Shown here one piece after another: positions 257 through 58,774 of a DNA stretch of 64,000 nucleotides. The notes beneath the pieces are model-generated. The model was given only the letters and a program-made list of their open reading frames with translations, was not told the DNA's origin and made no database searches. The DNA lies in contig CDRNST010000282.1 of the NCBI GenBank assembly GCA_977016875.1, positions 806,001-870,000 of the forward strand, given 5' to 3'. Both the position numbers and the translations under genes were made by a program. This DNA is from Pavona decussata (taxonomy: Eukaryota). Each line of letters starts with the position of its first letter. Within the stretch, counting starts at the first letter, position 1.

Positions 257-523
257 TTCTATCGCAAATAACTGTCTACCTGACAAATGGCAATGAGACG
301 GTCCTGGAAGGTGGTAATGTGTCTTTGTACTGTGATATATCTGGGTTTCCTAAACCAACCATTACCTGGTCAAAAGATGGTGAACCTATTGATGAACCTG
401 TTCAGAACAGTCGCTGGTTAAACTTCATTTACATCAAAAGAGACGTGGCTGGGAATTACAGTTGCCATGCAAACAACACGTGTGGAAAAAGAGACTCTGA
501 AGTAAAAAGAATTGATGTGCAGT
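257..523 (+). CDS. Gene A Ig exon (I-set/C2-like)
   Basis: ttccag|...|gtaag; [21 protein letters not shown]...[13 protein letters not shown]. Confidence 0.92.
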
Positions 524-56500: not shown

Positions 56501-58774
56501 TATAAGTGTGTGGCGGTGGGTTGGCATCTTTAGCTGTACATGTGAAATTCACCACGACGTCTGCACACACTTTGTTCTTTGAGAGGGTGATGTTCACAAT
56601 TAAAGTAACATTTTCAGGTTTATCTACACAAAAAGAAAGCACAATAAGGAAAAAGTTTTTTGGGGGAGTCGACATTTCGCAGTTTCCCCTTCTACCCATT
56701 CTAATGTTGTTGTTGTTGTTGTTGTTTCTCTTTCTCTACATTATAACTTATGTTCACGTGTGTTCATGTAAACAGCTGCTCTATACAACAAACTGAACAA
56801 AACTTGCTATTAATTTCAAATACAGATTATGAAAAGCTAACCTCTAAAACGCCGGTCTCCCTTTTCTCCTCCTCATATACTCCCCCCCCCCCCCCCCCCC
56901 CTAATATCAAAAGCAATAACTATTAAATGAAACAACCTCGTTGTAATGTACACTTACCCTTATGTTCTCAAAAACATTAAATGAATGCAAGGAAGTCAGA
57001 CTAAAATTCCCCAATACAGTAGTCTATCTAAGGATTCATTGAATGTTCTTAAAACCTACATGTAGTAACAGATAGTTTTCTTAAAAGCTACAATTGGTGC
57101 TGTGTAGACTTTTTATATAGAAAGAAAGTACAATGAGGTCTGCTATTCAAGGAAACTTACCAGTAGGTCGTTAAACCTTGAAGATTGAACATTTTGTTTC
57201 ACTATTTTAGCAAAGCTTGATACATTTTAATTAGAAAGACAAGTTAGAGAAAAATGGTCGGTTAACATTCGTTTCCATGTGCCCAACTGACTTTAGTCTT
57301 TCACTTAGAACTGTATAAAATAAAACTTATTTCAAACTTCAATCTAAGTGATTAAAAAAAGGGAAAATATCAGAATAGTGTGCGCCTCGAATCTGAGACC
57401 TTTCCTTCATTTCTGCTATCCTTACACTACACTGACGACTGAAGGTTAGCTGTTTAGGGTTACATGGACAGCACAAACAATGAAAGCTAACATTGTGCTT
57501 AAACCTAACACGCTGTTGGGTTCCTTGCTTAAATGGCACTTTATTTACTTAGTTCTCTGCCTACTAAATGGATTTCTGTTGTCCTGAACGGCAGTGATAA
57601 TAAGCAACACCACGTTATGTAAATCTCACAAGGTGTCCAAAGTCAGTTTGAGATATGGAAACGTGTGTTAACTAGAATAGTCCTTACACTGCACATCAAT
57701 TATTTTTACTTCAGAGTGTCTTTTTCCACACGTGTTGTTTGCATGGCACCTGTACTTCCCAGCCTTGTCTCTTTTGATGTCAATGAAGTTTAACCAGCGA
57801 CTGTTCTGAACAGGTTCATCAATAGGTTCTCCATCTTTTGACCAGGTAATGGTTGGTTTAGGAAACCCAGATATATTACAGAACAAAGACACATTACCAC
57901 CTTCATGGACCGTCCCATTGCCATTTGTCAGGTAGACAGATATTTGAGATAGAACTGGAAAACAAGGCCGAGACAATGACTATTTTATTTGCAATGACTG
58001 ACGGTAAATAGCTATATTATTGTAATTAATGCATCTTAATTGATGGGCCAATAACGATTTTGGCTATACATGTATTAATGTGAAATAAAGCATGACAAAT
58101 TAATTTCATTTGAAAAGGAAATAGAAGGCAAATTCCTTTGCTTGTTTCTCTTTACAGAGCCACACATTGGTATTTTTTCATTATGTTTCATTATGTTACT
58201 ATTGCATTGTTTTCTGAGTTACACTGATTCCAACATAACTGATAAGTGATAGTTATTTCTACACCATATTTCATCTGTATGTTAAAATATAGATAGAGGA
58301 GCGGCGGCTTTTTCGACGTCAAAATTAAAATCCAGCACAATCAATTTACACAATATTTTAGATTAAGGGGTGTAAATCTTGAATGTGGGGAATCAAGTTC
58401 AATTACGGGGGATGTAAGTGTCGTCTGATTAGTGCACACTAACCAAACAATAAGGTGCCTGTTTATGTCTTTCAATTTTGACTTTTTACCAAACTCACCT
58501 TTAAAAGTGACAGTAACATTGTTTGAACTTCGCACATTTTTCACAGGATGTATTGCCAGGCAGCTGTAATCATATTCTCCTTTTTCTGGTGGTTCCTCAT
58601 TCCATGTTCCACTGTCGCTTGCACTGATCAGCTCTTCATTCCGATACAGCTGATAGCTTCCCACTGCTGGATTAGCTTTTTCAGACGCCACACAAGTAAA
58701 ATTCACCCACAACGAATCAGAACAGTCTTTATTTTCATTTGTATTAGCTAGCAAAGTGACATTAGCAGGGTTAT
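33472..58774 (-). CDS. Gene B: spliced multi-Ig/SEA-like receptor tyrosine kinase, RET/FGFR-like kinase domain (5'-incomplete)
   Basis: Ig exons 58774-58499, 57954-57688, 56623-56345, 55970-55710, 53862-53587, 53041-52775, 51741-51463, 51088-50828, 48580-48326; stalk 46167-46117; SEA-like 41430-41345, 41076-41024, 40937-40747; TM 39985-39881; juxtamembrane 39799-39781, 39314-39275; kinase 39152-38846, 38641-38531, 38025-37835, 37493-37371, 37129-37059, 36907-36867, 34726-34630, 34327-34228; last exon 33537-33472. All GT-AG and in frame. Confidence 0.9.
34878..36500. repeat. Fold-back tRNA-derived repeat interrupted by the Crypton-like insert
   Basis: tRNA-like head on - (34985-35065) and + (36395-36477); 34878-34930 inverted at 35175-35226. 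Confidence 0.7.
35225..36350 (-). mobile_element. Crypton-like remnant with terminal hairpin
   Basis: [17 protein letters not shown]...[13 protein letters not shown]; palindrome at ~35227-35335. Confidence 0.65.
38197..38322 (+). mobile_element. Non-LTR retrotransposon RT fragment in a kinase intron
   Basis: [23 protein letters not shown]...DYLANR. Confidence 0.75.
39881..39985 (-). CDS. Gene B transmembrane exon
   Basis: [27 protein letters not shown] with canonical splice sites. Confidence 0.92.
40747..41430 (-). CDS. Gene B SEA-like domain (3 exons)
   Basis: ...[18 protein letters not shown]...FNVDPNSI followed by a Ser/Thr-rich stalk. Confidence 0.8.
41962..42286 (+). mobile_element. 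tRNA-derived SINE (decayed relative at ~9520-9750)
   Basis: A/B-box head; body GGTAACCCTGCGATGGACTGGCATCCCATC shared with 9639-9670. Confidence 0.8.
42333..42560 (+). mobile_element. tRNA-derived SINE of a second family
   Basis: TGGCCTAGTGG...GGTTCAAGTCC head and AT-rich tail. Confidence 0.75.
42585..44185 (+). mobile_element. Degenerate Crypton-like element (tyrosine recombinase, internally deleted)
   Basis: [39 protein letters not shown](P), [12 protein letters not shown]; palindrome at ~44035-44180. Confidence 0.75.
46430..47986. mobile_element. Non-autonomous TIR element with subterminal AAATGATCCC repeats
   Basis: TGTACAGGCCCGCAAATGAT at both ends, ~280 bp inverted arms; absent from the homologous gene A intron near 6815. 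Confidence 0.85.
46753..46844. mobile_element. 92-bp TAGCCT-ended MITE nested in the previous element
   Basis: TIR TAGCCTGCGAACGTAGACGT; 9-bp TSD TCAGGGGTG/TCAGGTGTG. Confidence 0.75.
48326..58774 (-). CDS. Gene B Ig exon array (9 phase-1 exons)
   Basis: Exon lengths 276, 267, 279, 261 repeated twice, then 255; the 267, 261 and 255 nt exons equal gene A counterparts in length. Confidence 0.88.

Follow-up and report, generated by a model that had tools for sequence, protein, structure and literature searches.

Can a coral present one kind of extracellular region on two receptors with different intracellular outputs, a tyrosine kinase in one case and a tail with inhibitory-type motifs in the other? 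This question is raised by a stretch of 64,000 nucleotides from the stony coral Pavona decussata (contig CDRNST010000282.1, here C282, positions 806001-870000 of the forward strand; 38% GC), hereafter the window, which contains two convergent genes, A on the + strand and B on the - strand, whose 3' ends lie 12.7 kb apart. An initial annotation of this DNA had proposed that one ectodomain of immunoglobulin (Ig) and SEA domains was joined in A to a cytoplasmic tail bearing an ITIM (immunoreceptor tyrosine-based inhibitory motif) as well as an ITSM (immunoreceptor tyrosine-based switch motif), and in B to a receptor tyrosine kinase (RTK). In our analysis exons were searched singly, and the joined exon chains of A and B were used for frame checks only. 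The reading that we consider probable is that A and B are real, convergent genes of a type-I receptor family found in scleractinians, with a kinase or an ITIM/ITSM tail as output, and that they may act as a pair through the mechanism outlined below. As deduced from the predicted exons, the plan of this family consists of an N-terminal V-like domain, many Ig domains, a stalk, a SEA domain and a transmembrane (TM) segment.

The tail exon of A carries the two motifs read in it by the initial annotation. At the level of sequence LVYADL fits the ITIM consensus (S/I/V/L)xYxx(I/V/L), and TQYADI fits the ITSM consensus TxYxx(V/I). An exhaustive profile search against 1.84 billion representatives returned 31 relatives of this exon, and the named sources are all scleractinian and belong to both major clades of the order. 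When these 31 distinct tail modules were aligned, both tyrosines were invariant, in the contexts xxYA(D/E)L and TxYA(D/E)I, within a cassette of approximately 55 residues whose proline-rich linker and FLKG end are likewise conserved, the ITIM-type and ITSM-type tyrosines being separated by about 35 residues. At least 13 tail exons in this genome alone keep both motifs at equal spacing. By its motifs, the tail of A is a conserved signalling cassette of predicted inhibitory type. A possible effector was also found: on contig C66, SH2 matches at 1230.5k and 1232.5k are followed on the same strand by protein tyrosine phosphatase matches at 1241.3k and 1243.6k, making this locus a candidate gene for an SHP-type tandem-SH2 phosphatase.

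The 11 in-window exons of A form one open chain of 794 codons that runs to the stop codon with AG/GT at every junction, provided that the acceptor at 10662 is used. Its + strand Ig exons match Pfam Ig, have AG/GT sites and phase 1-1, and are multiples of three in length. The gene begins at least 26.7 kb upstream of the window: a probe search located its N-terminal V-like exon at window -26673..-26260 (42% identical to the Montipora N-terminus), and four further Ig-type exons lie between that exon and the window. The type of TM segment encoded at 19124-19258 is also present in the proteins P0003, P0009 and P0049. Sequencing runs of RNA type from several studies contained 6-15% of the sampled words of 19100-20900, approximately the expectation from the exons alone. 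A is predicted to be a single gene in this genome, its ectodomain being spliced to the tail, and the indirect support for this splice, presented below, is strong. The intron that would be removed (10852-19123) contains retroelement pieces, among them an integrase-like open reading frame at 13480-14331 (-), and two 665-bp direct repeats (11023-11687 and 12559-13226) bracket an assembly gap and a copy of the stalk exon that would be in frame as an optional cassette of A.

In B, the chain from the Ig exons to the TM exon is open over 964 codons and that from the TM exon to the stop over 410 codons, with canonical sites. The full RET/FGFR-like kinase announced for this gene was found in the latter chain, where 10 exons with AG/GT sites supply every kinase motif (G-loop, VAIK lysine, catalytic motifs and subdomains VIII-XI) and Pfam PK_Tyr matches each kinase exon. 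Its closest relatives are RET and then FGFR; among solved structures, the Montipora homolog P0050, 84.5% identical to the kinase of B, is nearest to RET (~1e-87) and then to FGFR1 (~1e-79). The APE motif reads AYE, a family trait seen also in acroporid homologs, and a Grb2-type YDN site is located at the C-terminus. Probes did not detect the N-terminal exon of B within 20 kb downstream of the window; it lies farther out. The distal Ig exons of B are arranged in two tandem units of 4.9 kb with four Ig exons each, which differ by 0-5 nucleotides per exon. This arrangement could be a real duplication or an assembly effect; in a RefSeq protein from a chromosome-level Montipora assembly, 97 residues are repeated exactly with an offset of four Ig domains, so that a real and recurrent tandem process is plausible for B.

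The coordinates of the exons and of the three assembly gaps are collected in Table 1. All gaps fall outside exons, and because the exons flanking them are all of phase 1-1, the reading frame is independent of the gaps. An exon resembling the fifth Ig exon of A could be concealed in the gap that precedes the last Ig exon of B.

Table 1. Predicted exons of genes A and B and assembly gaps, in window positions (aa and nt, amino acid and nucleotide identity).
Feature	Position	Strand	Remarks
A Ig exon 1 (I-set/Ig_3)	257-523	+	phase 1-1; AG/GT; Pfam Ig_3 4e-15; 252/267 nt to B 53041-52775
A Ig exon 2 ('DKPENV' type)	1740-2012	+	AG/GT; Pfam Ig; 72% aa to B 51741-51463
A Ig exon 3	2365-2625	+	AG/GT; 83-84% aa to B
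A Ig exon 4	3086-3361	+	AG/GT; internal duplicate of exon 2 type
A Ig exon 5	4821-5066	+	AG/GT; Pfam Ig; counterpart in B not found
A last Ig exon (Ig6)	6232-6486	+	80% aa to B; 87% to RTK paralog at C282:960.7k
A stalk exon, 51 nt	7118-7168	+	48/51 nt to B's
A SEA1-like exon	8339-8421	+	phase 1 to 0; weakly similar to B SEA1, position and phases equal
A SEA3 exon	10662-10851	+	phase-0 acceptor 10662; B-homologous acceptor at 10682; 57% aa to B SEA3
Stalk-exon copy in A's long intron	11955-12005	+	AG/GT intact; its homology block stops at the gap
Assembly gap (N run)	12048-12180		inside A's 8.3-kb SEA3-to-TM intron
A TM exon (…PWTLIGG…WYMHKKRKCRKDTK)	19124-19258	+	phase 1-1; GTAAGT donor
A tail exon	20465-20811	+	ITIM-type LVYADL, ITSM-type TQYADI, stop codon
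B last exon	33472-33537	-	with stop
B kinase exons, continued	37129-37059, 36907-36867, 34726-34630, 34327-34228	-	first two are short exons
B juxtamembrane and kinase exons	39175-38846, 38641-38531, 38025-37835, 37493-37371	-	Pfam PK_Tyr; catalytic motifs
B TM exon	39881-39985	-	membrane span without charged residue
B SEA exons	41430-41345, 41076-41024, 40937-40747	-	GSVIV motif
B stalk exon, 51 nt	46117-46167	-	48/51 nt to A's
B last Ig exon	48326-48580	-	
Assembly gap (N run)	48692-48831		in the B intron preceding its last Ig exon
B tandem unit 2	49346-54228	-	Ig exons 53862-53587, 53041-52775, 51741-51463, 51088-50828; 97.5-98% nt to unit 1
B tandem unit 1	54224-59140	-	Ig exons 58774-58499, 57954-57688, 56623-56345, 55970-55710
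Assembly gap (N run)	55255-55440		where the sister tandem unit of B has an (AAT)n microsatellite

How alike are the two ectodomains? On recomputation we recovered the identity first reported for the pair formed by the Ig1 exon of A and an exon of tandem unit 2 of B; the short stalk exon is likewise common to both genes, and the TM and cytoplasmic exons are unrelated as had been stated, since homology stops after the SEA3 exon and the TM and tail exons of A have no counterpart in B. The claim of one ectodomain, however, stands for relatedness and not for identity: Ig exons are 72-88% identical at the amino acid level and SEA3 57%, and SEA1 is approximately 45% identical at the nucleotide level. 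In the same way, three SEA exons with identical phases had been described; SEA1 does agree in position and phases, but the middle exon is degenerate in A. The counterpart there of the B exon at 41076-41024, which ends in phase 2, is located at ~10457-10499 and lacks both a frame-compatible acceptor and a GT donor; a search of A for a canonical SEA2 exon with the phases of B found none, and the frame of A is open only when SEA1 is spliced to the second acceptor, at 10662.

The assignment of these exons to SEA draws on homologs. Single SEA exons of the window gave no Pfam SEA (PF01390) match, and those of SEA3 aligned to a Montipora SEA domain (E 0.004 for B, 0.01 for A). Contiguous homologs did match Pfam SEA, with 43.6 bits for P0049, 34.9 for P0050 and 35.6 for P0051 (cut-off 26.4). 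The position of the autoproteolysis motif of G/SVVV type is occupied by GSVIV in B and by GSAII in A. A single-sequence structure prediction of the Montipora SEA region reached a pLDDT of 38 and was discarded.

In a self-comparison, window 1-7996 (+) proved to repeat ~45182-59157 (-) in inverted orientation, with introns 80-89% identical and exons higher (94% in the Ig1 pair). Followed beyond the window, the inverted high-identity tract matches A -11087..7996 to B 72079..45182, a central Ig region of ~19 kb on the side of A. At one end homology stops within an intron at 7996, beyond which only the SEA3 exon can be aligned; at the other, identity drops to 75% beyond -11 kb, the value found for the Ig exon at -19k of A, outside the tract, and its B counterpart. 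Synonymous divergence (dS) between A and B is 0.05-0.25 in the Ig exons and 0.65 in SEA3. The confinement of high identity to this tract, together with the older divergence outside it and the dS of SEA3, fits a history in which A and B arose long ago as inverted paralogs and underwent recent re-copying or conversion of their central region. The ratio of nonsynonymous to synonymous divergence (dN/dS) is 1.4 in Ig1, 1.1 in Ig6 and 0.3-0.9 in the other exons, without a clear signal; given the small counts, it indicates at most weak constraint on parts of the ectodomain.

The Ig1 exon type of A occurs in this genome only in A and in the two tandem units of B. The distal Ig array is therefore peculiar to a single kinase gene and a single tail gene, so a kinase-type and a tail-type receptor do have such an array in common. 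A second tail/kinase pairing involves contig C217, where a close paralog of the tail exon (79% identical in amino acids) lies in a gap-free stretch with Ig, SEA3-type, TM and tail exons in order on one strand; the Ig type of this tail gene recurs at 79-86% in two other RTK paralogs.

The same duality exists in other corals. Both versions occur among the Montipora foliosa RefSeq models: P0049 and P0055 consist of Ig, SEA, TM and tail, and P0050, P0056 and P0060 of Ig, SEA, TM and kinase. Between P0049 (tail) and P0050 (kinase), 52% identity extends over 1040 residues that take in the last Ig domain, stalk and SEA, and the two proteins diverge exactly at the membrane. Models from both Montipora and Stylophora join the A/B ectodomain family to either a tail or a kinase. 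A Montipora capricornis RefSeq protein combines a multi-Ig ectodomain of the alternating exon types of A with the TM type of A and two tail cassettes; in Desmophyllum, KAJ7392884.1 joins a SEA3-type exon to the TM and tail type of A, and Ig or kinase exons were not detected within 10 kb of the SEA3, TM and tail exons of that locus. An Acropora protein has the tail type of A behind a different, V-type ectodomain. Two further Montipora RefSeq models, P0051 and P0058, have Ig, SEA and the kinase-type TM and end shortly after the membrane; they may represent shortened RTK-type receptors that lack the kinase, or incomplete models.

In P. decussata both kinds of gene are numerous. One kinase exon of B has at least 84 matches, clustered on five contigs (C282, C217, C100, C351 and C109); most are 70-97% identical and lie in same-strand clusters, a very large expansion of RET/FGFR-like RTKs. 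Four SEA and kinase paralogs are very close to B, and in the closest, at C282:954-988k, the membrane-proximal part is 89-96% identical to B in nucleotides and the distal Ig array is unrelated. Between 155 and 320 kb upstream, at C282:485000-652000, about eight + strand tail exons follow one another at intervals of ~16 kb, all reading ...VNYADL...TEYAVI...; as read from these exons, the region is a predicted tandem array of ITIM/ITSM-tail genes. The convergent layout is seen again at C100:1217841-1233524, where 11 kb separate a kinase and SEA exon on the - strand from a tail exon on the + strand that has retained TQYAEI and reads GTYADL at the first motif.

Several observations weigh against the reading of A and B as a functional pair. 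The assembly gap in the long intron of A separates its ectodomain exons from its tail exons, so that the link between them depends on a scaffold join, and a search of a protein database for transcript-derived open reading frames with the tail of A returned genomic ones only. As the counterpart of SEA2 is degenerate, the SEA domain of A may be incomplete. The ectodomains differ at 12-28% of residues and dN/dS is close to 1 in Ig1 and Ig6, which means that ligand specificities may differ. The Ig6 and stalk exons of A are closer to the RTK paralog at C282:960.7k than to B. A tyrosine is absent from the activation loop of B between DFG and AYE (ENIFERK, in 37371-37493 on the - strand), where the Montipora and Acropora orthologs read ENIYERK, with one activation-loop tyrosine. 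Finally, ITSM-type motifs can also signal positively.

An account that we hold to be somewhat improbable is that A and B are real genes of large, clustered and fast-evolving families but function independently. Their ectodomain likeness would then have arisen incidentally, as inverted neighbours underwent local duplication and gene conversion, with no common ligand or cross-talk. The abundance of kinase and tail exons in the same clusters means that tail/kinase neighbours are expected by chance, and the convergent neighbours at C282:651k/659k have no Ig exons in common. Such neighbours, and the affinity of the Ig6 and stalk exons of A to the 960.7k paralog, indicate that exchange among members of the cluster is mosaic, and dN/dS, at 0.3-1.4, gives no clear signal. 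Against independence stand the restriction of a distal Ig array to exactly one gene of each kind, the second Ig type that tail and kinase genes have in common, and the likeness of tail and kinase proteins of Montipora up to the membrane. That matched pairs have been kept more than once suggests that pairing has been selected for.

It is unlikely that A is not one gene, that is, that its Ig and SEA exons are a truncated, dead copy of the 5' half of B and that its TM and tail exons are part of a different transcript or came to lie there through a wrong scaffold join at the gap. The gap does lie in an 8.3-kb intron rich in retroelement pieces, and SEA2 has decayed in A. Nevertheless, A has diverged from B by 6-28% and yet keeps 794 codons open, with canonical sites throughout its 11 exons, the phases of the SEA3, TM and tail exons agree, and SEA3 of A is an old diverged copy located outside the recent duplicate. 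The same exon order is also repeated without a gap on C217, and in Desmophyllum and Montipora models. That window 1-8000 is a misassembled haplotype of B is very improbable, for although the Ig1 pair is 94% identical and the tandem unit of B, at 97.5-98%, could itself have resulted from collapse or expansion of a haplotype, the introns are only 80-89% identical, the copy runs in the opposite direction, A has an Ig5 exon without a B counterpart and lacks the tandem unit, the tract extends 11 kb outside the window with older paralogy on both flanks, and a four-Ig-exon internal repeat is found in a Montipora RefSeq protein as well.

If A and B do form a pair, the parts present in this genome suggest how it might work. 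Re-copying or homogenisation of the central Ig region between the inverted paralogs would have left A and B with a distal array of their own, and their similar ectodomains would bind the same or related ligands. Provided that both are expressed in the same cell, B would signal positively through its kinase; when A is engaged beside B, its tail tyrosines would become substrates of B or of a Src-type kinase, and the phosphorylated tail would recruit the coral SHP-type tandem-SH2 phosphatase, damping the signal. The logic would be that of paired receptors, of SIRP-alpha and of FGFRL1.

These precedents differ from the coral genes in instructive ways. The vertebrate paired receptors (KIR, LILR, SIRP, Siglec-5/14, PILR) are, like A and B, linked paralogs whose similar Ig ectodomains are kept so by duplication or conversion, with cytoplasmic outputs of opposite type and an ITIM/ITSM in the inhibitory member, as in A. 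Their activating members have a short tail, a charged TM residue and an adaptor with an immunoreceptor tyrosine-based activation motif (ITAM); B has instead its own RET/FGFR-like kinase and an uncharged TM segment, and so departs from these receptors in one defining feature. The ectodomain of A and B, a long Ig array with SEA, is also unlike theirs, and no homology is implied. SIRP-alpha, PECAM-1 and PZR, Ig receptors with ITIMs in their tails, recruit SHP-2 and modulate signalling by RTKs, and SIRP-alpha (SHPS-1) is phosphorylated downstream of RTKs. Like A, they have at least two ITIM/ITSM tyrosines; they become phosphorylated when tyrosine kinases are active and then dock a tandem-SH2 phosphatase, as is proposed for A. 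Unlike in A and B, their ectodomain is not common to the RTKs that they modulate.

FGFRL1 is a kinase-less paralog of the FGFRs with an FGFR-like ectodomain, first seen as a decoy, whose short tail binds SHP-1 (PMC12026108). It resembles A in being a kinase-less paralog of an RTK with an Ig ectodomain. The comparison is one of architecture: FGFRL1, an ancient gene that occurs singly, encodes three Ig domains and a His-rich tail, whereas the coral genes have more than 10 Ig exons, SEA and another tail, and belong to an expanded family in clusters, marked by recent exchange of ectodomains and by the conserved ITIM-ITSM cassette. Among cnidarians, the Alr proteins of Hydractinia constitute a clustered and expanded Ig-superfamily whose tails contain ITAMs or ITIMs, and the Hydractinia genome also encodes homologs of SHP and SHIP (PMC9546547). 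Both are clustered, expanded families of cnidarian Ig receptors; compared by description, the Alr proteins have V-set-like and Fn3-like domains and other tails, and no kinase partner has been described for them.

Relatives of A and B are already present in RefSeq for Montipora, Acropora and Stylophora, as 'hemicentin-1-like' and 'fibroblast growth factor receptor 2/3-like' proteins with the same domain order; these names are automatic, and the acroporid and Stylophora relatives are 54% identical in the tail cassette and 76-85% in the kinase. A literature search found no paper describing the kinase/tail duality in corals. The initial annotation knew of no described RTK/ITIM pair of this kind, a claim that needs to be softened, FGFRL1 and SIRP-alpha being partial precedents.

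Two other features of the window deserve mention. Between the 3' ends of A and B lies an orphan Ig gene fragment (25587-25883 and 26396-26690, +), in which one Ig exon is intact (Pfam Ig_3 1e-14) and one frameshifted; both are 33-37% identical to the exons of A and of another type. Upstream of the in-window exons of B, in an intron or flank, an open frame of 240 codons (62184-62903, -) without a Pfam match is probably repeat-derived.

In a wider sense, it is possible, and we advance it tentatively, that stony corals keep each Ig ectodomain type in a kinase and an ITIM/ITSM-tail version, in dozens of clustered genes that exchange ectodomain exons, as a kinase-based equivalent of paired receptors for self/non-self, symbiont or pathogen recognition. 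If this were true, the pairing of activating and inhibitory receptors would have arisen outside the vertebrates with an RTK in place of the ITAM adaptor. For the molecules behind coral allorecognition and the discrimination of symbionts or pathogens, this family, clustered, expanded, prone to conversion and offering its outer domain with a kinase or an inhibitory-type tail, represents a concrete set of candidates. Furthermore, with the conserved tail cassette as a marker, all inhibitory-type receptors of a coral genome could be picked out simply and their function tested directly.

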